A DNA stretch of 64,000 nt from Paragordius varius (Eukaryota; Animalia; Nematomorpha). Position 1 is the first letter of the stretch, and each line of letters opens with the position of its first letter. Both the position numbers and the translations under genes were made by a program. Under the pieces are notes generated by a model that ran no database searches, was not told where the DNA came from, and saw only the letters and a program-made list of their open reading frames with translations. Location: positions 1,550,001 through 1,614,000 of the forward strand of contig OZ176055.1 in the NCBI GenBank assembly GCA_964247055.1, given 5' to 3'. Of the stretch, positions 1 to 64,000 are shown piece after piece.

Positions 1-3000
1 AACCCTCATAATTTTCTGATAAAATAAATAATTATTTTTTGTACTTGATATATGTCGTCATCGCTCATATCTTTAATATCCTAAAAACATTACTATAAAA
101 GAACTATACCTTTTCCCAATCAACGCTAAAATTGCACGTCATATTATTAACGGGAGTTGATTTGTTAACCTAAAATATTTTATCATAGAAATAAAATTTA
201 ATAAAACATACATAAAGTTAAAAATGGGTATCCCTTTATAAAAGAATCGATGGTAGATTTTTAAAATACGTGATATATTGGACTAAATGATTTAATAAAA
301 GAGGTTTACTCATTCTGTTTTAACTACACCTTAGCCTTTTGTTTCGTGTTAACGGACATCCTTATTAAAGCACTATCAAAAAACAACAAAATATATATAT
401 TTGCTAAATTCCATAGGCTAAGAGCTTATAATTAACATTGAATTGATCACCAAGTATCACAAAATTCATTTTTTCTGGTGTTGGCCAAAACACAGCATTT
501 TTGCCGGACGATACGCTTTTTGCTACATGCTAAGCTTATATTGTTTTAAGTTAATCATGTGTTAAATATTTCGATTCCTTCCGATAAATGAAAAATAACG
601 CTTTGAAAAACTCGTAAAATGAGCCTGTACGGTAAAATGTATCTATATTATTATTACCTAAACAAATATTTCATTTGCGCTTCAAAGAATGTCTTTAAAC
701 ACTACAAGTTGGCCCTTTAAAATTCATGTTGGTACTTAAATTTTATTTTTTCATTTAAAATTAACATTTTTTATATAAAACAACCAACTTCTTTTGTTTC
801 GAATATCGATTCCACGCATTAACCTAATAATGTTACTAATCAAAAATTGCAATTTATAATCCAGACTTGAATAATTTTTAATTCCGTGCGATAATTTTAC
901 CGAAATTTAAATATTTTTAAAAAATAAATAAAATACGGTTTTTATATAAAAAAGCTAATATAGAAATTTTTAAATTTTGGTTAAATAAATATATTAGATA
1001 AAACATATTATTCTAATATCATACATAGTTTAATTAATAAATGTTAAAAAACAAAATAAATAGGTTAATTCTGGAAGTTCTCAAGAAAAAGCTTAATTTG
1101 TTTTCAACTGGTAATGTTCAAGGACCAAATCAAAATGTTATAAAGGAATCTTGAAGGGCAAATGGAATATATGACTATCTAGAGTTGTATCTGGGGTTCC
1201 AAACATATTTTTTATAAATACATTAAAGAATATGGCGGTACTCGAATTTCAAAGCTCGTTTCAAGGTATAATAATCGTTTTTATAATTTAGAACTTAAAA
1301 TATTTTAAAGCAGTGTAGCCCTATCAAAGTGTTCGCATAAAATAATATCCTGATATAATATTCATTAAAAAATTCTATCAGGGTTATGTTGGTGCTTTTT
1401 TGGCCCTAACTAGTGGAAAACTATTTACACTTTTGTTGTAACTTCTACATATCAGAATATGTCATAATTTGCGCACATTTAAAATTTTTTCGTGAAAGCC
1501 AATGTTTTATTTTAAAAAAATATTACTAAAATATATCATAAAATAAGCAAATACTATTTTTACAAAATTTAATTTTAGATGCCAACTTTAAAAGTCCCAA
1601 ATTTAAAATGGGCTTATTATCTAAAAATGAAGGTGAAAAGGCGGAAATTTTGCGAGAAAGTTTTGTAATATATGCTAGATTAAGGCATAACAAAACATAT
1701 ATTTTAACAAATTGCTTATTTTCTTCAAAAATTTAATTTTTAGCAAAAAAAGCATACTTCATATTATTTTAAAGCATGCCTTTATTTTAAAAGAACTTGC
1801 ACTTTTAAGGCTAAATTTGAGATTTTTAGAGCACACATCTAAAAATTAAAATATTATAAAAATATATGCTTTTTATGTGGAGTTTTTGATATAATTGGTG
1901 ATACTTTTTGTAATGAAGGTTTTAGCTTTCGCCAAAAAATTTGTTTAACAAAATTTCCACGATTTTTGCCATTTTCTGATGTGGAGTGCTTACCAAAAGA
2001 TGCAATACTTTCCTAAATCTCTCGTAAGGGCTTAAACCAAAAGCACCATGATTATTTAGAATATATACATGATACATCAGGATATTTTTACCATGCCCCC
2101 CAATGTACGCATTATTTGGTATTAATTCTAAATTTTATCAACTCTATTCCAATTGTGATACTGCAAAATCATCAACAATAATTAACATCTGAAGTTGTGG
2201 CTGGTTGTCATAAAGAAATTATGACATCTGACTCTAAACTTCCTCTTCATTGAAAATTTTATAAGCATAAAGCTCGAAACAAACCACTTAAAAAGATTTA
2301 TATGACAAAATTATTTTCTTCATTCAGCGCCTCTAATTTGTTGGTAACAAACAAATTTAGAAATCATAAAAAAATTCAAATCGAATATAAAAACCTCATC
2401 CATATTCATATCCATATCCATGATCTCGAGAAATGTTTTGTAATTTTTTTCCAACTCGGACCAATTAGTATAATTTCCACCCATTGCAATATATAATTTT
2501 TGCAACATTTTAAATTCTTCTTCATACAATTCTGTTTCTTTGAGTTGCGTTATTCGTGTCATGGTAACGCCTTTAATAACAAGTGTTGGGTTTATTTTAG
2601 GTTTCACATCATTCAATTGTTGAACAGTGTAGTTAAAGACCATTGGAATCAACAAAGGATTATCCGACAAAATATTCAAAATAATTGCCGTAATATTTTT
2701 AGACTTGGACTTAGAGTCGGGATGGTTGTAACTTCGTGTACTTATCGTACCGTACTTTTTGAGAAATTTCCTTATATTCTTAATTGCCAAGGTATCGTTC
2801 TTACTTTTTGCGCTATCTTGGTAGGCCAAGCAAGACTCGTATAGTGTGTTGTAATTTTTCAGGTATGTATTGTTAATTGTCGGTTTCTTTTCTATTAAAT
2901 AAAAACATTTATTAACAGTCAGAAGTCATCCTCGTAAAATGACCCTCTTATGAGGATTTCAATATGTTCGCTCAGGCCGTTAATGGCCTTTTCTGATTTA

Positions 3001-3716
3001 AAATATAACAAAATTTTAAAGTTTCAAAAACTTGAGTGGATTTTCCCCCCAAAGAGGGTGGAGTGGTGTAGAAAAGAGAAGGCTACACTATAGTTTTTAT
3101 TAAAAAAATATAAAAATCCATGAAAACTTTTGTACGCCTACGTAGGGCTTACAAAAATAGAATTTGGATTGAGATGGATGTCATAATCCAATTTTTGTGA
3201 TGTAATATATAAGTACCTAATCTTTTGATGTATTCGTTATATCTTGAAGGAGATTGTCCAGGTACAATTTTCTGTAAAGCTTCGCATTTTTTCCCAAGGA
3301 TATGATTGCAACTCTCTTAATATATGCATGAAGATTACAGAAAAAATTGAAATCATACACACAAAATATAAAACAAAAGACAAATATTATTTTTAGAAAG
3401 ACAACCATACTTTTTTAAACTTCCTATATTAATTAAATGTAAATCAGCATTTAGGTAGGCTATTTTAATAAATCAATATTGTGTTTATATAGTTAATGTA
3501 GGAAAACGTTTCATAAAGTATGGTTGTCTTATCAAGAAAAAATATATATCGAATAGTTTTAACGTTTTGACTGTAAAATTTTAATTTTACTGTAATAATC
3601 GATGTAATAATATTCATACCATTTGCTTGTGATAGATTAATAGCAGTGCATAGACAGGTTTGAAAGATAGTGATAAAGAAGCTTAAAGCTAAAATTCCTT
3701 TGCAAAATGGGCCCAT
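1..3716 (-). CDS. Family AC copy 1 (5' half; runs off left edge): secreted, diverged M13/neprilysin-like protein
   Basis: Exon 1 3620-3716 (MGPFCKGILALSFFITIFQTCLCTAINLSQAN, signal-peptide-like), exon 2 3217-3315 (ESCNHILGKKCEALQKIVPGQSPSRYNEYIKRL), exon 2395-2891 (EKKPTINNTYLKNYNTLYESCLAYQ...), all GT-AG and phase compatible. C-x7-C-x7-P and LYxSC match M13 N-terminal spacing. Small downstream exons at 1-700 match copy 2. Confidence 0.6.
1470..1990. repeat. Imperfect palindromic (MITE-like) intronic element; paralogue ~27230-27745
   Basis: aaaatttaattttagatg / catctaaaaattaaaatatt and cacat...cgtgaaa / ttccacg...atgtg inversions. Confidence 0.45.
3340..3600. repeat. Inverted-repeat (MITE-like) element in AC intron 1; relatives at ~5490-5720, ~29090-29350, ~53760-54240, ~62340-62600
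   Basis: gacaaccatactttt / aaagtatggttgtc inversion. Confidence 0.6.
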
Positions 3717-6098
3717 GTTTCTTTGTAATGAAATTTAAAAAAAAATATAAAATGAAGAAATAATAAATTTAGTGAATTTAAATAGATTTTTTTGGAGATG
3801 TTCTTTTTTTTCAAAAATGTAAATCAGTGTTGTATTTATTTTAATTTCTCAAAACAGGTAATAGCAAACTACCTTTTTAAGAATAAAACGCTTTTCTTAT
3901 AAATATATGAACATTTTATTATTATCGTATCACAATACCAAGAAAGTATAAATTTTGTTTGTTTTAGCAAAGGGCAGGCTCAATGTATAATAAAATAAAT
4001 GTAAAATTTTAAGATATATTTTAATTACGAAAAACATATATAAATTAGAGTTTTAATTAAATTTAACTATCCTTATGTGTATGATAGGTGTTTCTAATAA
4101 CATGAAGTCTAGACGTAATATACTTTTAACGAAAATATGTTTTCAATTATACAACATTAAAAGATATAGGAAATAGGTGTTGATATTTTGGAAAACACTT
4201 TATGAAACGGTTTATATAACGAAACAAATTAATATCTTTTAGCATTGCGATACGGCTTTTTACATAAATAGTTTCTATCAATTAGATATTTGACTGAATT
4301 TTTACTAAAATATAATATGACGAGTAAAACATGCGCGGTATTTCTTACCGATTCCTTGAGCTATGTGTGTGTATGCGTTTTAAAAACATTTTAAAAGACA
4401 ATGATCAATGAAAATAGAGTTAAAAAATGGGCCCATAGGCGAAAAGATAACTTACAAAGATTGCTCCGGTTATAGGATTTTTAATAAAATTTATAAGTTT
4501 AAATCGATTCCTTGTCAAAAGGCTTAAAAAGCAATCATTTTTTAAAATCTCTTACTTTATATATAATTAGATATATGATGGCATATAATTATTGAGAATA
4601 AAAATTTTACCATTGTACTAGTTGTGCCCTGTGACACATGACTTAAGCAAAACAATTGATAATAATTTCTGCCATAAATTGAAAAAAACTGAATTAAAAT
4701 ATTAGTAGACTATAAACATATACAGTAATCGGAATGTAATTTCATCTTTCTCAGGTTTTTGTCCAATATCTCTTTCATAATACTGGCCATTATATAATTG
4801 GTTAGATTCAATGTATTAAATTGTCTTAAGGCGTTATGGTATATTAGGGAGGGCATGGCACTTTTATGCGTGCCAGAGTTCAAACCTCTAAACTACGCAA
4901 TTTTTCCATCATCACTGTCAGCCCTGGGAGGCGAGTGTTATAAAACCTTCACATGTTCGGATACAATTTAAGTCCTTACCCTTTAATCTAAACTGTATAT
5001 TTTTTAATGTATAAAACCTTAAACTTTACCCATATATTTGGGGAGGCTCGGACGAGGGACTAATTTATAAAGTTGACTGGTATAAATTACCATATAAATA
5101 TAAAATATTTATTGTATCCCGACAGTTTTTCTGTAAATAGCTTTAAAACTTTGAATTAATATTTTTCTTAAAAGATAAATTAGTTAGGGACTATATTGGT
5201 GATGCCATATATACGTTTTAATTTATTTAAAAATGATAATATATACTCATGTTTATTCTCGATCACGTTTTATGTATTTAACTGACAAGTGCTGCAAATT
5301 ATTTTTGCGATTAAATGCTATTTTTGTTTTTGATGGTAAGGTAACCTCTGAAAAATCCAATTAGTAAAATTTATGTAATTTATTATGATTAAAAAGCTCT
5401 AATTAAAAATAAAATTGGTGCATAAATTTTGCTATATTCCTCTCTGTCAAACGTAACTTAGGCCTCACAGTAATTGAAATTTTACAGACAAAAAAACCGA
5501 CAGACAAATATTTTTTTATAATCAAACCATACTTTTTAAACCTTGATTTCTCGTTTATAATATTTAAAAATGTAAAAATAGACATTGTAAATAATTTTCA
5601 GCTCTATGTTATCTTTGCAATTTTAACAATGAGTTCTACATTAAATCTATAATAAAATAGTACAGCGATTTTTTGAAAAAAATATTTGTCCTTATGACTC
5701 ATTTTAATTTTGACTGTAATATAAAAAGTGTTTATGATTATCACAAATATATAATTTATTATCCCTCTAATATTGATTTATAGAAAGAAGAATTGTAATT
5801 TAAATTGTTTATAGCTATTACTAAAAGAAGCTATTTTTCCATTGTAAAAATATATCTAAAATAAAGAATATCAATTTGTTTTCTGTGATATAATTGTCAC
5901 TAAGATATAGTGTTATAGGGTTAGCAGTCATTTTTTATATAGGGCCAAATAAGTAATTAATGAGAGAACAGATATATTGGACTCAATCAACCACCTTTAA
6001 AATCTACTTTATCTGCTAAATTATTACCCATTATACCATTGAAACTATATTAAACACAAACACTCTTTTGAAATAAATAGCCATATTTGTTGGATTAA

Positions 6099-6675
6099 CA
6101 CTTGGATACAACACACTCATTTTAGTCCTTCGATTCAAATTGGGGTAGTTGGATACCCCAGGCCTGTTTAAATTGAATTCTTTAAAAAATATAGAAGGAA
6201 TCAAAACCATGGCAAAATTTTGCACTTATCTAACATTAATAAACCGAAATAAAAAAAATTTATTCAAAATACTTGATATTACTTATTTTAAGCTAAAATC
6301 GAAAGGTAAAAATTTCGTCAACGTGACATGTGTCAAATTGTAAAATTGAAATATTATACAAACTAAACCGTTTTTTCTATTTCTATCAATGTTAGATGTA
6401 ATTTATATAAAAAATTAGCTTTAGTTTTACCCTTAAAATTAGATAAAGACGATATTATGAAAAAATTTTGTAAAATAAAAATGGCGTCGAAATAGTTTGA
6501 GATGGAGCTTTTTTTTCAAAACAAAATTTTATCAAGATATTTTGGCATATTTATATAATATTTATCAGGATAGAAGCATAAATTTAAATTGGGACCGTTT
6601 GCTTCAGTAGTTTTTTAAAAATATTAATTTTAATTTAGTCTGGGGTATTTAGATACCCCAATTTGAATCGAAGTG
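6099..6675. mobile_element. TTAA-flanked MITE (piggyBac-like target)
   Basis: TTAA on both sides; inverted cttcgattcaaattggggta / taccccaatttgaatcgaag; absent from other array units. Confidence 0.8.
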
Positions 6676-9600
6676 TTAATAATAAAGTAAAAATCTGATT
6701 TTAGAAAAGAGTACATGATTGATATTCAAAGGAGTGATAAAAAAGTAACGATTAACTCGCCTTTTCTTATAAGTATTGTCTATCTATTATGGGCTTAGCT
6801 AAAATGGTATAAAGAAATATTTTATAAAGAAAATTCAAATTACATATAAATATATTTAGCTAAGGTATACTTGATTGATATATTTAAAAACAAATTAAAT
6901 TGAGATAAATTACATAAGTTATAAATTAATCGGAAACAACGTCAGCGTTTTAATTATTTCAATAAGATGTTAATATAATATATATTTTACAGGTAGTATC
7001 AATCTATTACCCAGACACGAAAATAAATAACATATATATATATATATATATCAATGAGCTGGCTAACTTTTTAAAACGAACGAAATAGATAATTGAATTG
7101 ATTACTCAAATAAATTTAATATATTATAATAAGTTTGATTATTTCTGAAGGTATTGGATAAGAGTTGTTTTAAATGTTTCTTTTATAGATTTTGCATAAC
7201 GATACTATAACATTGACGTCAAAAGGAGTTTGTTTAATCGAAAAAAATTAGGAATAAATTTGAATAAAAAATCGTTTGATATAAATTGATTTAGTTTTAT
7301 TCTAATTGAAGTAAAACAGTGCTAAAAATTAAAAGTAATTAAATATTTCGATATTCAATCGGATTTAAAAATAAAGTTTCTTTTATGGGTATTGGGTATA
7401 AATCAAGAGTATTTTATCAACTTTTATTGTTATAAAAATTTACGCAGTTAAATCAAATTAGAATTTTGAAGAGATTTTAAACAAGGATTCATTAATTTTT
7501 TGATGAGGTTAAAAAGCAAAAAGATTAAAATTTTTGAATTCGTTAAAAAACGCAAAAATCGAGAGTGTACAATCAATTTATAATATAAATAAATTTGGAA
7601 GTCTTTAAATTAAGGGAGGTCGCAAAATATTAAATTATTTATTTTTCGTATAAATTAGAATTAATAAAGGCTCTAGTCCCACATTTAAATCCACTAAATA
7701 GGGGATAGAGTGCTTTTTAAGACAAAAAATTAGCCAATTGCGCGATATACATTTTAATGTGCATAGCAATTAGATATTTTGGAAAAGAGCATACTTTCTT
7801 TAAAAGTCAATGATAACATTTTAATGGTAATTTATGAAATTCGAATGATGGAAACGTTAAATCTGAAATATTAAAATTAGTCAAAACCGAAGAACATTTT
7901 TTCCCTCGGTATTCAGTTCAAAAGATTTGGCCTTGAAATGAAAATAAACTTAATCAAAATATTGAGATAATAATTGGCGGCATCGAATACTTAAAAGAAT
8001 TAAAATCGTTTTACACCGTTTCCAACAAGTTATATGCAAAAAAATACGTGACTAATAAATAAAATTATTTATATAAATAAAATAAAAAAAAATATAATGT
8101 GTTTCAATTAAAAGAGGCAACTATCAAAAAGATTCCAAACGTTGAATATTAAAAATTGGAAAGATTTAACAACACTCGAAAATATAAAATGGTAAAATGG
8201 CAGCCATACAGAACTATCCATTACCTTTTTTGGGATTGTTTAACCAAAACCGCGGTTTTAAATGGCAAAAATATAATTTTATATTTTCCGTGTATATTTT
8301 CTTTCAAAGTGGCGCTCATTTTACATTGTAAAAGGGTATCTAAAATAAGGAATATCAATTTGTTTTCTGTAATATGATTGCCACTAAGATATAGTACTAA
8401 AATAGGGTCAACAGTCATTTTTTTATATAAAGCCAAATAAGTATTTAATAAGAGAACAGATATATTGGACTCAATCAATCACCTTAAAATCTGCTTTATA
8501 AATTTGCTTACCCATTATACCATTGAAACTATATTAAACACAAACACTCATTTTTGAAATAAACAGCCATGTAATGATAAAGTAAAAATCTGATTTTAGA
8601 AAAGAGTACATGTTGATATTCAAAGGAGTGATAAAAAAGTAACGATTAACTTGCTTTTTTTTATAAGTGTTGTCTATCAATCTTAAATTATGTTTCAAAA
8701 TGGTTGGGCTTAGCTATAATGGTATAAAGTATTTTAAGAAAATTTAAATTACATATAAATATATTTAGCTAAGGTATACTTGATAAACATATTCAAATTA
8801 AATTAAGATATATTACATAAATTATAAATTAATCGGAAACAACGTCAGCGTTTTCATTATTTCAATAAGATGTTAATATAATAATATATTTTACAGGTAA
8901 GTATCAATCTATTACCCAGACACGAAAATAAATAACAATATTAGCAATGAGCTAGCCAACTTTTTTAAAACGAACGAAATAGATAATTGAATTGATTACT
9001 CAAATAAATATAATATATTATAATAAGTTTGATTAATTCTGAAGGAGAAAATTATTAGATAAGAGTTGTTTTAAATGTTTCTTTTATAGATTTTGCCTAA
9101 CGATATTATAACATTGACGTCGCAAGGAGTTTGTTTAATCGAAAATTTTAAGAATAAATTAAACATCGTTTTAAAATAATAATTGAATTAGTTTTATTTT
9201 AATTGATAGCAAATCAGTGCTAAAAAATAGTAATTAAATTCGATATTCAATCGGAATATTTAAATAAAGTTTCTTTTATGGGTATTGGGTATGAATCAAG
9301 GAAAATTCATCAACTTTTATTGCGATTACAAAAATTTACGCATTATATCAAATTAAAATTTTGAAGAGATTTTAAACAAGGATTCAATAATTTTTTGATG
9401 AGGTTAAAAAGTAAAAAAATTAAAATTTTTGATTTCGTTAAAAAACGCAAAAATTGAGAGTGTGCAATCAATTTTTAGTATATCACAGATTCTAATTTTT
9501 TAGACAGAAAATACGTTTTTTATATAATTGAAGTCGCAAAATATTAAATTATTTTTTTTCGTATAAATTAGAAGTAATATAAGCTCTACTCACATTTAGA

Positions 9601-9695
9601 TCCACTAAATAAAGGGTACAGTGCTTTTTAAGACCAAAAATTAGTCAAGTGCGCCATATAAATTTCAATGTGCTTAAATATATAGCAATTAGATA

Positions 9696-10087
9696 TACCA
9701 TTTACAGTTCAAATTCACCCTTGAACAATTCAAATTCACCCTTGAACAATTCAAATTCACCCTTGAACAATTCAAATTCACCCTCGAACAATTCAAATTC
9801 ACCTAAAAATAAATTATGTGTTTTCGAACTAATATAACTCATTATTAATATAAAATATACCTTTATGGCATAATTAATTATTTTTTTCAGTATTATTTTA
9901 ATATAAAACAAAATTTTATTTTTTAAAAATATATTAAAATATAGGTAATTTTTAATCTTAAAAAACATGTTATTTATTTGAGGGTGAATTTGAATTGTTC
10001 GAGGGTGATGAATTGTTCAAGGGTGAATTTGAATTGTTCGAGGGTGAATTTGAATTGTTTAAGGGTGAATTTGAACTGTAAATGGTA
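9696..10087. mobile_element. MITE family 1 (TA-flanked, TIR TACCATTTACAGTTCAAATTCACCC, subterminal 21-bp tandem repeats)
   Basis: Perfect terminal inversion; 21-mer aattcaaattcacccttgaac repeated on both arms; insertion absent from other units. Confidence 0.9.
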
Positions 10088-12882
10088 TATTTTGGAAAAG
10101 AGCATACTTTCTTTAAAAGTCAATGATAAAGCATTTTAATGGTAATTTATGAAATTCAAATGATGGAAACGTTCAATCTGAAATATTAAAAACACATTTA
10201 ATCAAAACCGAAGAACATTTTTTACCTCGGTATTCAGTTTAAAAGAATTGGCCTTGTATAAATGAAAATAAACTTAATCAAAATATTGAGATAATTGGCG
10301 GCATCGAGTATTTAAAAGAATTAAAATCGTTTTACACCGTTTCCAACAAGTTATATGCTAAAAAAATACGCTTCAACAAAATTTGACTAATAAATAAAAT
10401 TATTTATATAAATAAAATAAAAAAAAAATATAATGTGATTCAATTAAAAGAGGCAACTATCAAAAAGATTCCAAACGTTGAATATTTTAAAAATTGGAAA
10501 GATTTATCAACACTCGAAAATATAAAATGTAAAATAGCAGACATCCAAAATCATTCATTACCTTTTTTTGGGATTGTTTAACCTGAACCGCGGTTTTAAA
10601 TGGCAAAAAATATGATATTTTATTTTTATATTTTCCGTGTATATTTTCTTTCTAGGATGTGGCAAAGCTCATTAAGGTATCTAAAATGAAGAATATCAAT
10701 TTGTTTTCTGTGATATAATTGCCACTAAGATATAGTGCTAAAATAGGGTTAACAGTCATTTTTTTATATAGGGCCAAATAAATAATTAATGAGAGAACAG
10801 ATATATTGGACTCAATCAACCACCTTTAAAATCTACTTTATCTGCTAAATTATTACCCATTATACCATTGAAACTATATTAACAAACACTCTTTTGAAAC
10901 AAACAGCCATATTTGTTGGATTAATGATCAAGTAAAAATCTGATTTTAGAAAAGAGTACATGATTGATATTGAAAGGAGTGATAAAAAAGTAACGATTAA
11001 CTCGCTTTTTCTTATAAGTGTTGTCTATCTATGGGCTTAGCTATAATGGTATAAAGAAATATTTTATAAAGAAAATTCAAATTATATAAATATATTCAGC
11101 TAAGGTATATTTGATAGATATATCTACAAACAAATTGAATTAAGGTAAATTACATAAGTTATAAATTAATCGGAAACAACGTCAGCGTTTTAATTATTTC
11201 GATAAGATGTTAATATAACAATATATTTTACAGATAATATCAATCTATAACCCAGTCACGAAAATAAATAACAATATATATATATATATATATATTTATT
11301 TAGCAATGAGCTAGCTAACTTTTTAAACGAACGTGATAGATAATTAAATTTTTAATTACTTAAATAAATATAATACATAATAAGTTTGATTATTTCTGAA
11401 GAAGAAAATTATTGGATAAGGGTTGTTTTAAATATTTCTTTACCTATAGATTTTGCATAACGATCCTATACTATAACATTGACGTCAAAAGCAGTTGGTT
11501 TAATCGAAAAAAATAGGAATAAATTTGAATAAAACATCATTTGAGATAAATTGATTTAGTTTTATTTTAATTGACGCAAAACAGTGCTAAAAATCAAAAG
11601 TAATTAAATATTTCGATATTCAATTGGAATATTTTAAAAATAAAGTTTCTTTTATGGGTATTGGGTATGAATCAAGAGTATTTTATCAACTTATATTGTG
11701 ATTACAAAAATTTACGCTGTTAAATCAAATTAGAATTTTGAAGAGATTTTAAACAAGGATTCATTAATTTTTTGATGAGGTTAAAAAGTAAAAAGATTAA
11801 AAACGCAAAAATCGAGAGTGTGCAATTAATTTATAATATAAATAAATTTATAAGTCATTAAATTAATTATTGAAAAATGGGAAGTCACAAAATATTAAAT
11901 TATTTTTTTTTCGTATAAATTATAAGTAATATAAGCTCTACACATTTGGATCTACTAAATAGGGGGTAGAGTGCTTTTTAAGACAAAAAATTAGCCAAGT
12001 GCGCGATATATAATTTTATGTGCTTTATGTAGCAATTATTTATTTTGGAAAAGACATACTTTATTTAAAAGTCAATGATAAAACATTTTAATGGTAATTT
12101 ATGAAATTCGAATGATGGAAACGTTAAATCTGAAATATTAAAAAAACATTTAGTCAAAACCGAAGAACATTTTTCACCTCGGTATTCAGTTTAAAAGGAT
12201 TGGCCTTGTATAGATGAAAATAAACTTAATCAAAATATTGAGATAATAATTGGCGGCATCGAATATTTAAAAGAATTAAAATCGTTTTACACCGTTTCCA
12301 AAAGTTATATGCTAAAAAAATACGCTTTAACAAAATTTGACTAATATATAAATTTATTTATAAAAATAAATTAAAAAATGTAACAATATAATGTGTTTCA
12401 ATTGAAGAAGGCAACTATCAAAAAGATTACAAACGTGGAATATTTTTGAAAATTGGAAAGATTAACACATAAAATGGTAAAATAGTAGACATCCAAAATC
12501 ATTCATTACCTATTTTTGGGATTGTTTAACCTGAACCGCGGTTTTAAACGGCAAAAATATGATATTTTATTTTTATATTTTCCGTGTTTATTTTCTAGAG
12601 AGTGGCGGCAAAAACTTTAAATAATTCGCCACTAAATACCAATGTTTAAAATATTTGACCGAAACTCCTAAATTTTTGTAATCGGAATTACCACCATTGG
12701 TCATGTATGAAAAAGAAACCACTAGGAATGACTTGCGACTGGAGGGTGAAACTCCCAACAAATGTTGGACTACAATAGATTTTGCTTTGCCCTCAAAAAT
12801 ACTATTTTATTTTTACGGTGATTTAATAATAATTTAAAGAAATAACTTGAAATGATTAGAATTATATTTGAAGTGTGTAGGC

Positions 12883-14720: not shown

Positions 14721-15399
14721 TAAAATTGGATAAAAATATATTTTAATTTTAATTTATCACAAATAATTTGGACAATGTTTATTTTGATATAAAGAGCACG
14801 GATTTCCCAAGGTTACAATTACAAAGATTGTTTTAACATTAAGGATTTCGTTGTAATTTAAGTCAAAATTTATATTCGAGTGTCTCTCCCTTATCGCATT
14901 TCATTATAACAACAGTTAAAAGTTAGAAGATAGTTTTTAAAACATTCCTTGTCATTAGTATAAAAGGTTAAAGAGCATTTTTATATAAAAATGGTAAAAA
15001 AAATCTTTAAAATATAAAATTATGCAAAAAACTGACCACATAAATAATACCAATTTCATTTTTATATTATTTATATGTTCTTTCCATGGATTTGACATCT
15101 CAATTATAAAAGTTGGTCGATTATATCAAGAAGAAATGACAAATTATATTTTATGCTAATATTTTTTGTTTTTAAATCACGCAAGTTTTTGGATATTAAA
15201 AAGCAATCAATCATATATCCAGCGCACCCGGTTATGTCAAAACTTAAATTACGAAATCTTCATGACCGCTTTATGATAACTTTCAGGTAAGTGTTGGTGG
15301 TTTTCAAATAAGATAAGCAGATTGGTGTGCTTAAATTATCTAATAACTTACTATTATTAAACATATATGCTTAACTTATTTATCATATTACCTCCACGC

Positions 15400-51884: not shown

Positions 51885-53878
51885 CTACGAGTTCATTTCA
51901 TTGTCACAATTTTCGGACACCTCATTAGCCGTACATGAGAAGAGTTTTGCTACCTCTGACATAGAACCAAGCGCCAAAAACATATCTTCTGTCTCAGTTT
52001 CATCGAATTCAAATGGACTGTTACAATATTCCTAGTTAGAATATTAAATATATAAACAGTTGCGTGCACAAAATCGGGGCACTATTTGAAACATCCGGAT
52101 TAAATATATCTATTTAAACAGAAAAATGGATTACGGCATTAATTATTTATAAACTAATTTTGTTTTTTAACGCAAAAAACAATAAATTAGCTCAAACATT
52201 AAACATCAAAATTAAAATATTTTGGTTGGCTTGTTGTTATGTTAACATATAAAACAACGTCTTTTTTTAGAAAATTTAGAGATTTAATTCATAAATTAAA
52301 ACATCAAGTTTTGACCAAATAAAAAATATAGCCGATTTGACTGCTCATGACTACAGCTTGTCGTGATAACCATTCAGATAAAACCATAATTTGTAGCTAA
52401 ATAAATAATAACTGATAGATAAATTTTTAAATTTGTTTATGCTGATTTCATAACACCTGTTAAAAAACTCTGTTTAAATTATCTGACTGATGAATTATCA
52501 TTCAGAATGTCATGTTAAAACTGTAAAGCCAACTTCATATGTTAGTTTGAAGCGTATTAATTTCTTTATGCGAAAATTATACATTAAATTGCCTCATTAT
52601 ACTAATTACATTACCTTCAACATGGAATCAATTTGTATATCCAACTGTTCTTGTTGTTCATTTAGAATTTTCTATGCAAAAATTTGTAAAGAATATAGGG
52701 TAAAATTATTATCTCAATTTTATTTTTAAATAAAGTTAAAAAAAACAGGCAAATTTTTACCTTTGCCATATCAAATGAACTCTGCAATAGTTTTGTATGC
52801 TCATAAGCTTCATCATTGCACGTTGAATTTTCTATCACATAATAGATTTTAAAATCATTATGATCATATTATACCATTTAAAGTTTAAATTCACCCTAGA
52901 ACAATTCAATTTCACTCTAAAATTAATTATGTGTTTTTTAAAAATTACCATTATTTTATAATATTTTTAAATATGAAATTTTATCTAAAATTAATATAAT
53001 GCTGAAAAAATAATAAACATGTCGTAAAAATAAATTTCATATTATTGATGAGTTTTATGACACATAATTAATTTTTAAAGTGAATTTGAATTGTTCACGG
53101 GTGGATTTGAATTGTAAATGGTATATTATTGCAAATTATTAATTGAACATATTGAATAAAATAATTATTACCATCATAGGGTAGGAGCCAATTACCAATC
53201 CAGAAATTATTGCTAATCAGTCATAAAATGGAAGCATAAATTAATTACATAAAATAAAATATTTGAAATAATAATAATATTCGTGGATTGTTACTTACAT
53301 AAATTTAGAGTTGTTTTCCAAATTTATAATGGGCAAATCACTAAACCATAAAAATATAATTTAATATGATTCAATAATAAAAATTATTTTATAATATGTC
53401 ATTTTTAACCCTATGTGCAAAACAAATTATGTTTTTAACCATTTCTAAATTATAATTATTTAATATTCGAATAAAGTAATGTGTATAAATGATGGGGAAG
53501 CAGGATCACTGATTAGAGGTAATAGCGAATTTACGACTTAATAATTAAAAAATCCAAGACAGATAAAAAAAATCCTAAAAGAGCATTATGTGTCTACCAG
53601 TGACAAGTTTACATTAACATATATGTAGCAAAAATGGAAAAGGGTATAGTTTTTAAAATTTTTATATCGTTTTTTGTTGTTAAGAGCAATTAAGAACGTG
53701 TCTTTGAAAAGCAATTATTCCGAAAACGAGATGGCTCTTAAAATTACAGAACCTGGAAACGTTAAAATATAAGGGAAAATATTTTTATATTAAACACAAC
53801 CATACTTTTTAAAATTTTATTTTTTCTCAAAAAAGCTATTTAGTTACAATTTGTAATATACGGGATTCATTGTGTTAG

Positions 53879-53920
<42 letters not shown>

Positions 53921-56900
53921 TTTTCATACTCTGCCATTTAAAACAATGAGATTTATTGAAATTCAAGATTTAAAAAGTATGAGTGTCTTTCAGAAAAAAA
54001 TATTTGTCTCTATATTTTTTACGTTTTTCCGTATAATTTCAGTTTTTAAAAATATACATACTAAGACCTTACATTTAATTCATAATTTATTATTAAAGCT
54101 AATCGGTTTTTACCAAATTATGAATGAGAGATATAAATTTAATTATTTATATAGTTTACAATCGCAATTGATTAATTAATCAATTATAGCAAAAAAGGAT
54201 GTACAAAAAAGTATGGTTGTGTATTTAAATGTTTTGTCTGCTTATATTTTAAATTTTTTACATCTGAATCTAAAAAATATTTAAGTCAATAAAGATATGA
54301 ATATTTAATTATATGGTAAATACACTTACATAGATGGTTTAATATTTTCAAAGTGTCCAGCAAGATTTAAGATATTATGCATGTTTTCCAAAAAGTTTTT
54401 CGCTTTTGGCTTTGGATTTATCTGAGCATATATGAATTAACATTTATGATTTTAAGATTAGCGATAAATTTAATTTGTTAAATATGACGTACAAATTTGT
54501 ATGTAAATTTTAATAACGTAGTACCAATTCTATTGGATCGTGTTTTGGTGCAAACTTTGATATGGTTTTTTTAGATTCCTATTAATATATTATATATATA
54601 CATATGAATAAGTACATTGTAAAATTTTGAGTAAATATGTTGTTAAGTTGCTATACTTGTAGTTAACAAAGTAGTAATACAAATGGAAACAGTTGATGGC
54701 ATTGTAGAATATACCATTTACAGTTCAAATTCACCCTTGAACAATTCAAATTCACCCTCGAACAATTCAAATTCACCCTTGAAAATTCAAATTCACCCTC
54801 GAACAATTCAAATTCACCCTAAAAATAAATTATGTGTTTTTTCGAACTAAAATAACTCATTATTAATATAAAATATATCTTTATGGCATAATTAATTATT
54901 TTTTTCAGTATTATATTAATTTAAAACAAAATTTTATTTTTTAAAAACATATTAAAATATAGATAATTTTTCTTAAAAAACATGTTATTTATTTGAGGGT
55001 GAATTTGGATTGTTCAAGGGTGAATTTGAATTGTTTAAGGGTGAATTTGAATTGTTTAAGGGTGAATTTGAACTGTAAATGGTATATAATAATCCTATCT
55101 CATTATTCCGATTGCGTTAAACCCTTTTTAAACAATTTATTTGATAATTTTGGCGATAATCAATTTTTTTGAACTTAAGCTACCTTTAAAGTAGATTGTT
55201 TTAACTCTAAAAATAATTATAGTTATAGAAATACTTAAAATTCAAAATCGATAGCTTATTAATTCGTTAGGAAATACAAAGCAAACTCACGTCCTTACAC
55301 ACTGTGTGGCGAAAATGCGGATATGTAATATTATATGTAATTTAGCAAAAGTCCCAGCATATTGAAGATATGATGTTAATATAGTAAAAGTTATTTTTGT
55401 TTTTCTGCTATTAGTTAAAATCAAAAAATAAATACAATAGAGCTAACTGTATTTTTGTTAAAATATACAAATTATTATTGATATGGATCTTTATAAAAGA
55501 TCCTGGAAGCATTACAAGGTTCAAACCACACTTTGGCGTTAGTTCAATATTAAAAACTTATTTTTAAATATTATTATATTTATAATGCATTAGACTTTGA
55601 AGAGAAATTTAAATTATTGTAAGTTTCTAGAACTTTGTAGAAAATAAAAAAATTATCAAGGTGTAAGGATATCCATACGATACGTACGAACGGGCAAAAG
55701 ATGACGCATGTTTCATTGATTGTATTAAATTTTTTACACCAAATGTACGATAAAAACGCGATTTTTGGTTTTATGATAGAAAAATTAAAATACCCTTTTT
55801 ATATATATATATATATATATCATTTACCATTTAAATTTCCATTATCCTCAAACTTTTAGGTTTGATTCATAAATATTTTACGTTGCGTCCCGTATTACAA
55901 GTTAATTCGCAGTTAAAAAATGAATGCGTGTAATTAAATTATGTCTTACCTTCTTGACCAAGAAAAATATTAAGGGCAATGTGATTACGAAAACAGATTT
56001 TAAAACAGCAAATGCCATATGTGAAAATTTGAAAAAATTAAATATGGAAACAGACGACCTCTCTGTTTAATTTAAATAAATTAATATTCAGGAATAAAAA
56101 TGTTATATTGCATTATACATTATTTATTTAAAAATTAAGGATTATTATTTCTGTTTATGAAGAAATAGCGCTCTTTAAAACACAACTTAATTAAAATGCC
56201 TATTATTAATAATCACTATGTAACTTTAAGCAGATTCTGGGGAAACTAAATTATACTTTTTAAACCAAAAAAATGCAACAGCTTTTTTTCACAAATTTGG
56301 CAGTGTTTTAAAAGTTAAATATATACCTTATTTTTATGATCTTTATAATGTGCCTTGATATGTTTCATTATATTCTTTATCATTTTCAGCTAAAAATAAA
56401 ATAAAAGTAAAAAGAAAACCGAAAAAAGTGAAATGTTAAAACCCAAAATTATTTTTTACTATTTTGTTAGTATCATTAAGTTGAGTCGAATATGTTAAGT
56501 AACGGATGAAATCTGGATAAGAAAAGTATAGCATATTGACACATCTAGTGGGCAAATGGTTAGAATTAAAATATTGTGTTTCGTTTAATGAGACCCGAAT
56601 ATCTCTAAAAGTTGGAGCTGTAAAGACTGCCAAATCAGTCGCCATATATAGGATGAAAATATCCTTCAACATTCTAATTATACAATAATCATGTATGTAT
56701 TTAGGTATTGAATCACATTGTAATATATGTCAAAAATGGTAGGATGTAGAATTCAACGCAGTATTTAAGAAAAGAATTAGCCTAACGTACAAGAGGATTA
56801 CAACACTACTTTTTATACAAAAACTACAATATGATTTCATAGTGTATAATTATAACTATATGATTATAATTATCCTTCAATGACCGATTAATTATTCCAC

Positions 56901-59900
56901 TGTGTGCAAAAAAGAAGGTAAATTTTTATAACAATTTTTCATGAGATAGCTTATGACCAGTAAATATATTTGCGGCAAAATAATTAATTTGTTGACGACC
57001 TAATTTTTGGGAAATTGATAGAAAATCAAAATCAGGAAAAGGATGGATAGGTAAGGATAATTAAAAAATTGTGACAAAAGATATTAGGTTGGTTTTTATT
57101 TTAAAAGATATTTTTTATAATAAGCCTTATAGGGTTTCTTCAAAATCCATATAAAAAGATGAAACTATTAAAAAAATCTAAATTATCTAGCTAAACTCAC
57201 TATTAAAATATCATTCATATTTTATTCAGTAAAAAAATTAAAATTAAAATAAAACTAAAAAATATTGTTCTTAATTTTTCATTTTTTTGTCATCTGGTTT
57301 ATGTGTGTATAAAAAATTTATACTGTTTTTTCAAAAATCTTACCAGAGTGGGTTACAAAGTATATATTTATGCAGGACGTGATTTAAAATAATGGATTAA
57401 CCAACAATCCGTACAAACTGTTACAGGTTTGTTTTAACACAAATTAATATTTTTACTGGGATGTATAGATATTTGGTTGATTTTATACTTTTAATTTGCA
57501 TAAATTATATACTTTATAGTTCCCACTCATGTAAGATTTCAAATTGTTAATTTTTTATACACTCATAAACCAGATGACAAAAAAATGAAAAAATGAAAAC
57601 CATTTTTTAGTTTTATTTTAATATAGAATTTTCTTACTGGATAAAATATAAATGTTTATATTTTAATAGTGAGTTTAGCTAGTAACTAATTAAAAATATA
57701 TTTTAATATAAATTTTATTTTTAGTGTCTAAAGAAAAACACCATCTCTTAAACTTAAATTTTTAAGAAACCCTATATGATTTTAGGCTTCTATATAATAT
57801 CTCCTATGAGAATTAACCATAATATTTCAACTTCCTTATTTTTTGACCGATTTCGATTTTCCCTCATATTTCAAAAATTAGGTAGTAATAAAAAATTTTA
57901 CGGCAAATGAAAACGCTGGTCATAGGCTATCTCATGCCAAAAAATATTTTGTTAAAAAATTTTTTGTCTACAGTGTAAGTCTTACGTTGGATTTTGTTTT
58001 AACAAGGAACCAATGAATGTGCTATATTTTTTCGTAAAATCTGGATTTCCATCTACGAATTTAAATTTATTTTGACACACCATCCCAACTTTTTCCCAAC
58101 GTTGTCTCATAACAGTCCACATAATCTTCTAATAGGTTAAATAATTATTTTTTATACTTGATATATGTCCTTGTCGGTCGTATCTTTGATTTTCTAAAAA
58201 AATATTATTATTATTATTATTATAGAAGAATAATACCTTTTCCCAATCAACGGTAAAATTGCACATTATATTTTCAACGGGAGTTGATTCGCTAACCTAT
58301 AAAATATTTTATCATAGATGTATAAAAAGATATATAGTGTGAATTAAAAATGAATAGGATTTAGTCTCATGATTGATGTATAAGATCCATAAAACATAGG
58401 GCTAAACGGCTTACTAATTCTGTGTTCGTTAGTATTTTTTCAACGGTATTGAAAGAGTTACAATAATATATATATTTGCTATGTGAAGGCATAATAAATT
58501 AATATTAAATCTACTATACGAAAATGCATTTCTTCTGCTAGCCAAAATCCGGCTTGTTTGAAGTACGAAATGATATTACGTTTATTCGCTATAGGTTTAT
58601 TAATTAGGTATGCTTATAATTATACCATTTACAATATAAATTCATATTTGAACAATTCGAATTCATTCTTGAACACTAAAAATAATTTATGTGTTATAGG
58701 GATATAACTCATCATTCATATGTAACACTGTGTGCAAAAATTTTTTTATTTATGAGATAGCTTATGACAAGCGTATTCATTTGCCACAAAAATTTAAATT
58801 TGTTGACAACCTAGTTTTGGAATATTGAGAAATCAAAATTGGGCTCAAAGTGATAATTAAGGATAAATTAAAAAATTGTGATAAAATTTGAAATATTATG
58901 GTTTATTATCGTTTAAGGCGATATTTTCAATATATAAATAGCTTAAAATCATAGTTAGGGTTTTTTAAAATAGCTCAAAAGAGGCGTTTTCTTTTATCAC
59001 TCAAGAGACAAAATTGAATGAAACTAAATAATTTTTTTAGTTATTTACTACCTAAACTCACTATTTTTAACATTCATATTTTATTGAGTAAAAAATACTT
59101 ATATATCAAAATAAAACCAAAAATATTGATTATTTTTGCATTTTTTTGCCATCTGGTTTATGAGTGTATAAAAAATTTACACTGTTTTATTTTTGGATTC
59201 TTACATGGGAAATTATTAAGTATATTGCAAAAAAGGATGTAATCAATAAACAATCCTTACGAATCCCTGTAACCTGTTTTGTGACAAATTAATTTGAAGA
59301 TTTTACGGATGTTGATATTCCACTAATTTTAAATCCTATTTTGTATAAATTATATATTTTATAATTCGCACTCATTCCAAAATAAAACAGTTAATTTTTT
59401 ATACATTCACAAACCAGGTGACAAAAAAATGTGAAAATAATTAACAATATTTTTTGGTTTTATTTTGACATATGCTGAATAAAATATGGATTTTAAAATT
59501 TTAATAATGAGTTTAGCTTGTAAACAATTAAAATTATATTAAGATAGTATAAAAAAATTTTTGTCTTATGAATGTGTTAAAAACGCCATCTTTTGTGCTA
59601 TAATAAAAAACCTAACTACATGATTTTAGGCTATTTATATATTGAAAATATATCATGAAATGATAATAAACCATAACATCTCAAATTTTAACATTATTTT
59701 TTGAATTATTAATTATCATTATTTTTCACTTTTTGCCCGATTTTGAATCTCTCAATATTTTAAAAACTAAATTGTCAAAAAATAATAATTTTTGCGGAAA
59801 ATGAATTCACTGGTTATAAGCTATCTCAAAAAATTTTTTTCCGTTAAATTAAAATGACTCCTTTTTTGCATACAGTGTAATATATATTTATGGCATAGTT

Positions 59901-62736
59901 TATTAGTTTTTAAGTATTATTACACTGGACAACAAATTTTTTTGTCACTCGAGTTTTTTGCATTTTCTGATAATTTTAACAGTAAATCTGAAATAAATAT
60001 TATACTTCCACGTAAGAATTTTTCGATTTATTTGATTATGCGCTCTCTTAATCAAAATTTTGCTAAAAAATGTTTTTTTTTAAAATATTCAAGTAATGTT
60101 TTGTAATATATTCCAAAGTGTTATAACTCTATGAAATACATATTAATATGTATTACATCGACAGTTAATATTGGACACAGAGAGCGACAAACGCGCAAAG
60201 CGAGAGCATTTTTTTAATTATATTTTTAAAACTAATGGATGAAAATAGCTAAAACTTTGTCTAGATGGTGTCGAATGTCCAAAAAAGATAACAGAAAGTT
60301 TTTTTGACTAAAACATTTTTTATTGCTTTTATGTCACTCACAGCCATTTTTAAGTTGTGTTTTTCAAAAATTACCATCTCATCAAATTTATTTTCTTTAC
60401 GAGGTTGATAATTTTGAAATTTTAAAGATAAACACAAAGTTTAAGGATTTTTGATCTTTTATGGCCATTATAAATTACACAGTAATAACTATGCATTTTA
60501 GTATCCACTAAGTAAAATATTTATAATAATAATTTTTATTAAAAAGCAAACCAAAAGCTTTTTCAAACCTTTTTTTAAATCAAATACTAATATAACCCTA
60601 ATTTATATTAAAATAATTATTATTCTCAAATTGGGCCTGTGAAAATTTTTGACTTTAAGGATTGTGAATTTCGACCATTTAAACCCAAATAAGTTTTACC
60701 GATTGATTTAAATGACTTACTGCCATTTAGAAGATACAGTTTTTTACGCTCTTTCGAATGATATAAAATACATGGCTTCATATCTAAAACTTTTAATTTT
60801 CAAAATTTCAACTTCAATGTGAAATCGGGGCCAAAAATTATCGATCTCTGATTTAAAAAAATTCATGGGTATAGGACCAATTTTCTTATTAGATATACTA
60901 ATTATGTACTTTAGAAATAAATTTTGTACAAGAATGGCAGTTCAAAATAGTCAAAATTTGTTGTCTAGTGTTATTTAAATTTTATTTTTTAATATAATAA
61001 GATATAGCTTTAATCTTTAAAAGAATACATAAGTTATTTTAAGATGAATTCGAGTTGTTTAAGGGGGAATAGATCGTAAGTGGTATTTTGAGAAATTTTT
61101 TATTAGGCCACCCTTAAATATGCGTGCGATCCATTATGTCAAACTTGGTAAAATGGACCTGTGCCGTAAAATGTTTTACTTATTATTACCCAAACAAATA
61201 TGTCAAACACAGTCTACATTGGATAATAGTAAAATATTTACATAAATTATACGTATTTGAAACAAAGAATTCAGGGCTACTTAAATTTCTTATTTTGATT
61301 TAATAGAAAATTATAATGCAATAGCCCTATGCTATGATTACTAAAATTTTTTCAACTCTAGTTTGAATTGCAATATTCATTGCAAAATAGGTAACAGTTT
61401 ATAAACATAAATGCCCCAAATATTTTTTTATAAAAATTTTAAATAAAAATAGAGGTACGAACCTTATTCTCATTCATACCCATATCCATGATATTAAGAA
61501 ATTTATCGTAGACTTCTTTCAATTGCGGCCAATTATTATCATTTCCACCCATTGCCAAATATAAACTTTCCAGTATTTCCAATTCTTTTTCATACAATTT
61601 TGTTTCTTTGAGTCGCGTTGTTCGAGTCATGTTAACTCCTTCAATAACGACTTTGTTTTTTATAGGTTTTACACCATTGCTTTTTGGAACAGTAGTATAG
61701 TTAAAGACCATTGGAAACAATATATAATTATCACTTAAAATATCAAAAATTCCCGTATAATTTTCAGAAGCAGACTCGGACTGAGCGTAAATTTGTTGAC
61801 TTATGGCGCCGTACTTACTGAGAAATTTCGTTATATCACTAAATGCCAAAGTATCGTTTTTACTTTGTGGGCTATTCTGGTAGGCCAAGCAAGATTTGTA
61901 TAGTGCATTGTAATTTTTCAAGAATCTATTGTCAATTGGATTCTTCTCTATTAGAGCAAATTTTATATGTTAACAGTAACCCCCCTTATGATAAATCTCT
62001 TATGATAAACTTTATTTTAAAAAAGTTAGCTAAGGCCTATAATGGCCTTTTCTCATTTAAAATATAATATTATTTTAAAATTGGAAAAAAAGTTGAGTAA
62101 ATTTTCCCACTAATAAGGGGGTTAATGAGCGAAGGATGGCTACATCGAAAACTTTTAATTGCTCTGCGTAAGGCTAACAGGGATTGAAATCCGTTTTAGA
62201 TCGATTTAATTCGTTTTATAATATAAATATAAAAATACCTAATTTTTCAATGTATGCCTGGTAACTGGGAGGGGATTGTCCAGGTACAACTTTCTGCAAA
62301 GCTTCGCATCGTTTCATAAGAACCTGATTACAACTTACTAAAAATATACGTAAAAATCAAAATTTACAGTCAAAACGTTAAAATAAAGAGACAAATTTAG
62401 TTTTTGAAAAGACAACCCATGCTTTTTTAAATATTTTTTAAAATGCGAAATAGAAAATGCAATTTTATTAAAACAATGTGATTAGATAGTTAAATTAGCA
62501 AAAATTATGCTTTAAAAAGGTATGGTTGTCTTCTCAAAAAATATATTTGTGTATTATTTTTTACAATTCTCTTGTATGATTTTAATTTTTACTGTAATAT
62601 TGGATTTAAACTGATGCAGATATACTATAAAATTCATACCATTTTGTTGGGAAAGATTATTAGCAGTGCATAGACCGGCTTGAAAGATAGTGATGAAGAA
62701 GCTTAAAGCTAAAACTCCTTTACAAAATAGGCCCAT
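51885..62736 (-). CDS. Family AC copy 3 (more diverged paralogue), introns expanded by MITEs
   Basis: Exon 1 62640-62736 (MGLFCKGVLALSFFITIFQAGLCTANNLSQQN), exon 2 VSCNQVLMKRCEALQKVVPGQSP, exon 61463-61947 (LYKSCLAYQ), in-frame exons at ~57985-58296 and ORF 56436-56672, terminal exon 51885-52031 (EYCNSPFEFDETETEDMFLALGSMSEVAKLFSCTANEVSENCDNEMNS*). Splice positions conserved with copy 2. Confidence 0.6.
52872..53123. mobile_element. MITE family 1, diverged copy
   Basis: taccattta...taaatggta termini and one 21-mer per arm. Confidence 0.7.
53881..53918. repeat. (AT)n microsatellite; others at ~7033, ~11276, ~31799, ~34873
   Basis: Direct sequence. Confidence 0.95.
54712..55084. mobile_element. 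MITE family 1, near-identical copy
   Basis: Matches 9696-10087 nearly base for base. Confidence 0.9.
56898..57975. mobile_element. Foldback/MITE family 2 (cactgtgtgcaaaaa...tacagtg), long internal inverted repeats
   Basis: Terminal inversion plus extended arms (e.g. catctggtttatgtgtgtataaaaaa / ttttttatacactcataaaccagatg). Confidence 0.8.
58726..59877. mobile_element. Foldback/MITE family 2, second copy
   Basis: Same termini and internal palindrome as 56898-57975. Confidence 0.8.
59923..60970. mobile_element. MITE family 3, second copy
   Basis: Colinear with 22296-23244. Confidence 0.85.
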
Positions 62737-63119: not shown

Positions 63120-63379
63120 ATATTATGAGATATTTTAAGACCAGCGTATCAAATAGTGAAAATATCTCAAATGATAATAAACCGTAATTGTCAAATTTTT
63201 TTTTAAATTATCCTTGATTATCCCTAATTTTCACCTTCTTCCCGATTTCGATTTTCTCTTAATATTTTAAAAACTAGGTCGTCAACATATTAAAACTTTT
63301 GCGGCAAAACGCTGGTCTAAGCTACCTCATAAAAAAAATTTTGTTAAAAGAAACTAACCCTCTTTTTTTGCATACAGTG
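63120..63379. mobile_element. Family 2 right-arm fragment
   Basis: ttttttgcatacagtg terminus and subterminal ccgatttcgattttc...taggtcgtcaaca block. Confidence 0.6.
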
Positions 63380-63879
63380 TATATATACGATTTTATTAAT
63401 TTTGATTAATCTAGCCTTGTGAGCATGATCGCTCTATTATGACAACTATAAAATTTACATGTAGCAGAAAGGTTTTTTCGCTTATAATAATAATTAATTC
63501 ATAAAATAAACACGAGTGTTGATATTTTGGACAACTGTTTAGGTAACTGATTTTTCTAACAAAACAAATTTAAACAGCTTTAAACTAAAAAAACAGTTTG
63601 TAAATCAACTATTTGTTCGGATTTGTAACTATAAAATCATATGGCAAATGAAAAATTTGTGGTATTTCTAGGCACCTATTTAAGCTGTGTTTAACCACAT
63701 CTCTTGAGGAAAAAAATGGGTATTGATTGGGAAATTATTTGTACAAAAATTTATACAAAACTTTTCAAAGGCAATCAATAATGTGATGTAAAAAACCTCT
63801 TATAAACAATATTCGGTATAATATATATGTATATTAAACTTTAAGCAGCAATTAACTTTATATTTACTTTCTAAACTTC

Positions 63880-64000
63880 TATAAAGTTGTGTTAAATGAT
63901 GGCAATAAATTATTAAGACAAACTAAAAATTATACCATGTTCACTAGCTGAGCCCTATCATGCGTCGCCTGACTTAGTCTAAACAATTTAATAATGGAGT
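63880..64000 (+). pseudogene. 5' fragment of a third family B copy (continues off right edge)
   Basis: 63896-64000 aligns by eye with 4575-4675 and 31835-31930 (gatggc..aattatt..ag..aaaatt.tacc..actag.tg.gccct..tgactta..aaacaatt.ataat). Confidence 0.5.

Follow-up and report, generated by a model that had tools for sequence, protein, structure and literature searches.

Inactive, secreted relatives of neprilysin, a peptidase of the M13 family, are known in flies and nematodes, and their roles are mostly obscure. Flies possess 21 Nepl genes, predicted to be inactive and mostly secreted, beside 7 active Nep genes (PMC8223033). Taxon-restricted M13 groups, some of them without key catalytic residues, have also been described in insects and nematodes, and non-enzymatic roles have been proposed for them (Bland et al. 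2008, PMC2259306). In human neprilysin, the HExxH motif comprises His583, Glu584, and His587, and Cys142 is bridged to Cys410 by a disulfide (PMC2259306). The third zinc ligand is Glu646 in GENIAD, and Asn542 lies in VNAFY/VNAYY, which positions the substrate. Our study concerns a stretch of 64,000 nucleotides (C6:1550001-1614000, hereafter the window) from the hairworm Paragordius varius, an animal with a genome of 110 Mb and 26% GC, and a minus-strand gene family found there, which we call AC. A preliminary description had read the locus as a series of head-to-head pairs of AC with a plus-strand partner, B. We consider it probable that the window is instead a direct tandem array of one gene, AC, formed by segmental duplication and not of gene pairs, that AC is likely a diverged M13 descendant, and that B was misread.

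All coordinates are window positions, so that negative values and values above 64000 refer to flanking DNA, of which 60 kb was added on each side for comparison. Mapping of the AC exons over these 184 kb (-60 to +124 kb) yielded four collinear copies, all on the minus strand, and no others:

AC0: -18287 to -26949, minus strand; fourth copy, 22 kb left of the window, located by exon mapping.
AC1: 3716 to -5072, minus strand; only the 5' part lies inside the window (1..3716); located by tblastn with the AC2 exons at 92-100% amino acid identity.
AC2: 19901..29468, minus strand; whole gene from ATG to stop, assembled as an exon chain with all exons checked open.
AC3: 51894..62736, minus strand; older copy, with ~71% DNA identity to AC2 in alignable segments and 59% amino acid identity in exon 3.

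The starts of AC1, AC2, and AC3 (3716, 29468, and 62736) are 25.75 kb and 33.27 kb apart, in agreement with the repeats of about 26 kb and 33 kb reported previously. Self-comparison of the window aligned 1-4155 with 25777-29913 at 95.6% identity, together with further collinear matches, and revealed an older copy in which 2392-3964 and 28149-29716 align to 61460-63003 at ~71% identity. With the flanks included, three young units were found to begin near -29240, -7422, and 17556, with 88-97% identity, in addition to the older unit carrying AC3. Units 0 and 1 have 10.9 kb in common (10483-21350) at 96.8% identity, including debris of an RTE-like retrotransposon; since this insertion is common to the young units at that identity, the young duplications postdate it. 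The longer unit 2 contains extra spacer, made up of a 1.5-kb direct-repeat element, a 108-nt satellite, and hAT and reverse transcriptase (RT) remnants. Gene and spacer are therefore repeated together in one orientation and at graded levels of divergence, the pattern of tandem segmental duplication. The repeated minus-strand AC of the preliminary description was recovered, but neither its plus-strand B nor the pairing of the two, as no conserved plus-strand frame was found. A unit of ~22-33 kb would have been copied once long ago and twice recently, with unequal crossing-over as the simplest route; each unit would consist of an AC gene and a spacer, itself composed of local repeats and the remains of transposons, and the outcome would be the four same-strand copies.

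The structure of the AC gene was derived from a collinear chain of minus-strand coding blocks, detected by tblastx when the young units were compared with the old unit and when both were compared with four distant paralogous loci. The gene had been described as split into many short exons, and AC indeed has multiple exons on the minus strand, the first of them encoding a signal peptide, and can be mapped in all copies. The exons of AC2, and those of AC1 that fall inside the window, are as follows:

AC2 exon 1: 29372..29468, minus strand; ATG and hydrophobic signal-like peptide, donor G|GTATGA in phase 1; kept in all four copies.
AC2 exon 2: 28972..29070, minus strand; C-x7-C followed by PGQ.P..Y..YI.KLG; kept in 11 family members, splice sites and phase as in AC3.
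AC2 exon 3: 28152..28648, minus strand; 165 codons with the Y-x-S-C block; Peptidase_M13_N according to ESM Atlas.
AC2 exon 5a: 25884..25943, minus strand; followed by a 30-nt intron.
AC2 exon 5b: 25818..25853, minus strand; followed by a 26-nt intron.
AC2 exon 5c: 25649..25791, minus strand; kept in 9 members.
AC2 exon 6: 25214..25430, minus strand; LKD..L..A..L block with R-C 42 residues on; best profile match to M13 'WK.YL.w.L...A..L'.
AC2 exon 7: 23991..24044, minus strand; AG and GT sites common with AC3, phase 0 to 0.
AC2 exon 8: 23806..23897, minus strand; conserved across paralogues, with consistent splice phase.
AC2 exons 9-12: 20691..21124, minus strand; blocks 21124-21086, 21011-20964, 20938-20822, and 20744-20691, with approximate splice sites.
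AC2 last exon: 19901..20038, minus strand; stop at 19901; F-x-V-x-G-x-M ... F-S-C ... C; best profile match to M13 C-terminal 'L.N...F..AF'.
AC1 exons in the window: exon 1 from 3716, exon 2 ~3316-3206, exon 3 ~2901-2392, exon 5a 169-110, exon 5b 77-42, exon 5c starting at 15; minus strand.

AC2 and AC3 have GT/AG sites and phases in common for exons 1, 2, and 3, and the phases are consistent from exon 5a through 5b, 5c, 6, and 7 to exon 8; the exon 4 region and exons 9-12 could be placed only approximately. The very short introns reported earlier are present in AC2 between exons 5a and 5b (25854-25883, 30 nt) and between exons 5b and 5c (25792-25817, 26 nt), and the introns at these positions in AC3 measure 46 and 26 nt. 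Eight paralogues, one of them a compact copy of 4.6 kb, keep the 5' (A) half and the 3' (C) half of the gene collinear, with order and strand unchanged. The predicted product of each copy is ~600 residues long, starts with a signal peptide at its N terminus, and contains many N-x-S/T sites as well as cysteines in a fixed set. One dispersed repeat occurs in different introns of AC2 (22226-23251) and AC3 (59895-60977), at 81-86% identity, and also near the paralogue at C6:2.39 Mb; the two intronic copies look like independent insertions.

The family extends well beyond the array. Searching the genome with the exon 3 peptide identified 12 open copies and one broken copy, located on C2 (four), C3, C6 (seven, counting the four of the array and the broken copy), and C11. 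The paralogues outside the array show 36-41% identity to the array copies in exon 3, and yet this exon retains without variation the cysteine of Y-x-S-C (10 of 10 members), a G-G-x-x-x-N-W block, and a number of N-x-T sites, while the R-C cysteine of exon 6 is kept in all eight genes examined. The exon 3 copies at C11:1754248-1754718 and C2:15074986-15075456 are near-identical, with two amino acid differences, and may reflect either duplication in the very recent past or haplotypes left uncollapsed. Ratios of nonsynonymous to synonymous divergence (dN/dS) were obtained from Nei-Gojobori counts per exon, summed over seven exons. For AC2 against AC3, dS is 0.35 and dN is 0.235, giving a dN/dS of 0.67 (range of the copies against AC3, 0.64-0.67), and among AC0, AC1, and AC2 themselves dS is 0.03-0.05 and dN/dS 0.35-0.46. 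The amplified and fast-diverging cluster for secreted proteins that had been proposed is thereby supported, since the locus has four copies out of the 12-13 of the whole genome and dN/dS values reach 0.67.

It is necessary to consider whether the array copies might be decaying duplicates, either unexpressed or pseudogenes, in which a high dN/dS reflects relaxed constraint. The values of 0.64-0.67 against AC3 would agree with this, as would the weak third-position excess among AC substitutions, which counts against our interpretation, and one member elsewhere is plainly broken: the exon 3 at C6:2416400-2416845, a pseudogene with in-frame stops and a frame break, adjoins an intact copy at C6:2405895. 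A codon-position periodicity test did not help, since coding and non-coding sequence could not be separated and the AC exons themselves show little third-position excess. However, after a dS of 0.35 no stop codon was found in any of the 28 exon copies checked (seven exons in each of four copies), splice sites and phases are kept, the cysteines and glycosylation sites are invariant among paralogues of only 36-41% identity, and the young copies stand at 0.35-0.46. We regard decay as quite improbable; as judged from their sequences, the AC genes are maintained but fast-evolving.

The spacers at 3.7-19.9 kb and 29.5-51.9 kb, in which the B genes had been placed, were examined separately. Their main components are:

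Spacer module: 5519..12880, plus strand; about three tandem copies of a ~2-kb stop-filled sequence that holds the 'EII..EYL' and 'C-x7-LP' motifs.
hAT-type transposase remnant: 13346..14730, plus strand; frameshifted; its unit 2 counterpart at 44074-46610 matches DUF4371.
Conserved block: 14868..15365, plus strand; locus-specific, with a copy at C6:1623559-1624061; holds the 'HGFD..GR.Y' frame.
Non-LTR (long terminal repeat) retrotransposon remnants, RTE-like endonuclease (APE)/RT: 15420..17527, plus strand; common to units 0 and 1; APE/RT appearance judged by eye.

The ~2-kb non-coding module is also present at 33933-43423, so that each unit holds 2-4 tandem copies with 82-92% identity. Apart from diverged traces beyond AC3 on its right side (64.6-65.0 and 67.6-67.9 kb), it is confined to the array. 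We rejected its classification as a dispersed transposon. The RTE-like open reading frames (ORFs) gave no Pfam match, and the remnant matches a second copy at 47430-47807 with 39% amino acid identity. The 1.5-kb element of unit 2 (29914-31396), absent from units 0 and 1, lies upstream of AC2, 446 bp from its start codon; its 297-bp direct repeats are 100% identical, its internal ORF is zinc-knuckle-like, and an inverted second copy is found at 36719-38221. The element resembles an LTR-type insertion of very recent date. The satellite in the same spacer (40328-41676) has units of ~108-117 nt, on which higher-order repeats are superimposed at periods of 319 and 428 nt. Scans of the window for tRNA genes and Rfam families found none.

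The motifs on which family B had been based are isolated and fall in these stop-ridden repeats, in the hAT and RTE-like remnants, or in one non-coding-looking block. Three were rejected as coding sequence: 'EII..EYL' (7964, 10288, and 12240) stands directly behind an in-frame stop, in the 2-kb repeat that has stops in all frames; 'HGFD..GR.Y' (15085) lies in a frame that has a TAA in the copy to the right of AC3; and 'DW..EII' (63725) belongs to a frame of 21 codons with no counterpart in the other units. 'C-x7-LP' is located at 12763, within the repeated module, which has stops in all plus frames and no exon-like conservation profile. In tblastx comparisons of the spacers with the older unit and four paralogous loci, only repeats and transposon remnants were recovered and no protein-level conservation was seen. 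No plus-strand match to any AC exon was found in the 184 kb, no Y-x-S-C-like or C-terminal motif was found on the plus strand, and Pfam gave no match at E<=10.

Real head-to-head pairs could nevertheless exist if every spacer contained a plus-strand gene of micro-exons too diverged for the tests used. Micro-exons and micro-introns do occur in this genome, and old units agree at 85-96% over the block of 500 nt at 14868-15365, which contains the donor-like CAG|GTAAGT at its end and is ~96% identical over its 3' ~300 nt between units whose AC exons are only ~71% identical. Nonetheless, unit 2 is without most of this block, the motifs are beside in-frame stops or broken in the other copy, no protein conservation was detected between old and young units or with the paralogous loci, AC-exon and Pfam matches are absent from the plus strand, and the spacer is mostly local repeat and hAT and RTE-like debris. 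The block has no Rfam match at E<=1, and its folding shows no marked RNA structure; gene conversion, a regulatory function, or an exon missed by annotation could each account for it. A hidden B gene is therefore very improbable in our estimation. We conclude that B is not a gene family and that chance motifs in non-coding spacer were misread as one; because the B gene is unsupported, the head-to-head and tail-to-tail pairing falls with it. The spacers yielded neither an open plus-strand frame with conservation nor a paralogue nor a family match.

The relation of AC to the M13 peptidases was evaluated by several approaches. For exon 3, all 30 of the 30 ESM Atlas matches were in Peptidase_M13_N clusters, with a top score of 0.94; by the tool's own warning, scores >=0.9 arise for 4-10% of shuffled proteins, and one third of shuffled proteins have a uniform top ten. 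The Atlas family counts in favor of M13 because it is identical to the one proposed beforehand from motifs, out of thousands possible. When the exons were aligned one by one with hhalign against 45 bacterial M13 proteins, three of them had their best local match on the cognate motifs, none significant singly: exon 6 matched 'WK.YL.w.L...A..L' with E=0.16, the last exon matched the C-terminal 'L.N...F..AF' with E=0.49, and exon 3 matched 'D.Y.S.MD' with E=0.13, the latter only with the search restricted to the N-domain. Spacing was compared with a consensus of 29 bacterial M13 proteins. The Y of Y-x-S and the T/P-L pair are 17 residues apart in both AC and the consensus; the K of LKD/WK and the R-C/RWKR position are separated by 42 residues in AC and 43 in the consensus; and the AC sequence E-E-E-F-K-L-L-Q-K-L-Y-I-V-M-G-G (E..F..L...Y..M.G) matches R..Y..H...M..L.G of M13 position for position. 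By this spacing, and with no significant alignment, the cysteines of exons 3 and 6 would correspond to Cys142-Cys410 of human neprilysin. The N-terminal cysteine pair and the C-terminal F-x-C...C of AC also fit what we take to be the disulfide layout of M13, which we use as a lead only.

A considerable set of results weighs against this assignment. In six-frame scans of the genome, Pfam PF05649 gave 41 matches, with neither the window nor any AC locus among them, and PF01431 gave 12, none on the C6 stretch of the window, while both scans recovered the canonical M13 genes. The canonical genes are located at C1:2.78 Mb, C3:4.55 Mb, C4:3.13 Mb, C4:4.03 Mb, C5:8.79 Mb, and C7:7.06 and 9.14 Mb. The comparison with the Pfam M13 models suggested in the preliminary description was carried out on single exons; with hmmscan at E<=10, neither the exon 3 sequences of 10 members nor other exons matched M13. 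A PDB profile search with the exon 3 alignment retrieved only designed repeat proteins (E ~0.7). Against 1.84 billion representative proteins, the exon 3 profile had just two matches and none in M13; both are bacterial Ig/cadherin-repeat proteins (adhesins), rejected as spurious relatives because the match is confined to an 'FNYTV' stretch. Against its own genome, the profile recovered family members only and did not reach the canonical M13 genes. Whole-profile hhalign of exon 3 with the 29 bacterial proteins selected a different M13 stretch (E=0.4), and four of seven exons fell off the expected M13 position in the exon-wise comparison; a column-shuffle null for the exon 3 motif match gave p ~0.14, and global-mode hhalign was uninformative. 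AlphaFold2 with exon 3 alone and an alignment of 10 sequences reached a predicted local distance difference test (pLDDT) value of 46; the model was unusable, and a Foldseek search of PDB gave meaningless matches. In ESM Atlas, the exon 3 "recognition" value (1781) and shared-feature count (162) are below the comfort levels of the tool, and exon 6 had no usable match. Lastly, the motif and spacing arguments were made by eye, and the expression of AC, like its exon 4 region and exons 9-12, is a prediction from the DNA.

These results could be taken to mean that AC is an orphan, lineage-specific family of secreted cysteine-rich glycoproteins without any link to M13, in which the motifs and the Atlas outcome arose by chance or convergence. 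All alignment-based searches are negative, the local profile E-values are only 0.13-0.49, and Atlas scores and top tens of this kind also arise for shuffled proteins. On the other hand, the Atlas family is exactly that predicted earlier from motif reading, three exons fall on cognate motifs in collinear order with matching spacings, and the cysteines fit the presumed M13 disulfide layout, in which the Cys142-Cys410 bridge is documented. We consider an orphan origin unlikely. The descent of AC from neprilysin-type M13 peptidases is, in our opinion, quite likely but unproven, and the earlier M13 assignment remains plausible for AC on the Atlas and local motif matches, while a match to an M13 hidden Markov model (HMM) was lacking, exon by exon. 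AC would then be a very diverged non-catalytic N-terminal domain of M13 with a C-terminal tail, having lost the zinc-binding core.

The state of the zinc site was determined by scanning the three sense frames of eight genes (AC0-AC3 and the four distant paralogues). HExxH was absent from every sense frame of the eight, and so was the GENIAD-like E-[NSTA]-[IVLA]-[AG]-[DE], which did not occur anywhere in the window either. The NA[FY]Y-type motif, resembling VNAFY, was absent from the AC genes save for one occurrence in a stop-ridden frame of the C11 paralogue. Considering HExxH, NAFY, and the looser E-x-x-A-D together, six of the eight genes are without any match, and the lone matches in the C3 and C11 paralogues are in stop-ridden or out-of-place frames. 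In addition, the portion from exon 8 to the last exon encodes far fewer residues than an M13 catalytic domain. Working, enzymatic M13 membership of AC is excluded by these predicted coding sequences. The AC protein would be unable to cleave peptides and would most likely be an extracellular binding or scaffold protein with a fast-evolving surface. The effector role put forward in the preliminary description is conjectural. One could speculate further that AC proteins are hairworm-specific, secreted, neprilysin-derived decoys or binders at the parasite-host interface, for example binding host neuropeptides uncleaved; that the duplications and dN/dS reflect an arms race or host manipulation; and that the spacer block at 15060-15365 is a regulatory element or an unannotated transcript. 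We offer this as a rather doubtful proposal.

A family of this type would extend the theme of inactive secreted neprilysin relatives to a phylum of host-manipulating parasites, and it would provide concrete candidates for secretome and host-interaction work, so diverged that standard annotation misses them. The case also shows that micro-exon genes in very AT-rich genomes can escape annotation based on ORFs and HMMs, and that motif reading can invent a partner gene. Our literature search returned no paper linking Nematomorpha and neprilysin.

The canonical M13 proteins (neprilysin, ECE-1, PHEX, and Kell, and the bacterial PepO/Zmp1) probably share with AC the Y-x-S-C block, the LK..L..A..L...R-C block, and the F-x-V-x-G-x-L...F-x-C...C tail, along with their spacing. 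AC differs from them in having a signal peptide instead of a type II membrane anchor, in being shorter, in lacking HExxH, VNAFY, and GENIAD, and in giving no significant HMM match. AC also resembles the Nepl proteins of Drosophila, such as Nepl15 (PMC8223033, PMC7822871), which, as AC would be, are a lineage-specific, M13-derived expansion, predicted to be secreted rather than membrane-anchored and without catalytic motifs; the 12-13 AC genes beside canonical M13 genes in the hairworm are comparable with the 21 Nepl and 7 Nep genes of the fly. However, fly Nepl proteins are classed as M13 and have been compared one by one with the four catalytic motifs, whereas searches with Pfam, PDB, and profiles miss AC, whose loss seems to go beyond the key residues, with most of the peptidase domain gone or scrambled. 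AC also belongs to a horsehair worm and lies in tandem arrays with units of 22-33 kb. The groups of Bland et al. (PMC2259306) were found by ordinary M13 similarity, and the hairworm family is far more diverged than they are. The AC family would thus be of the same kind as the inactive M13 relatives of flies and nematodes, carried much further, in a new phylum and in young tandem arrays.

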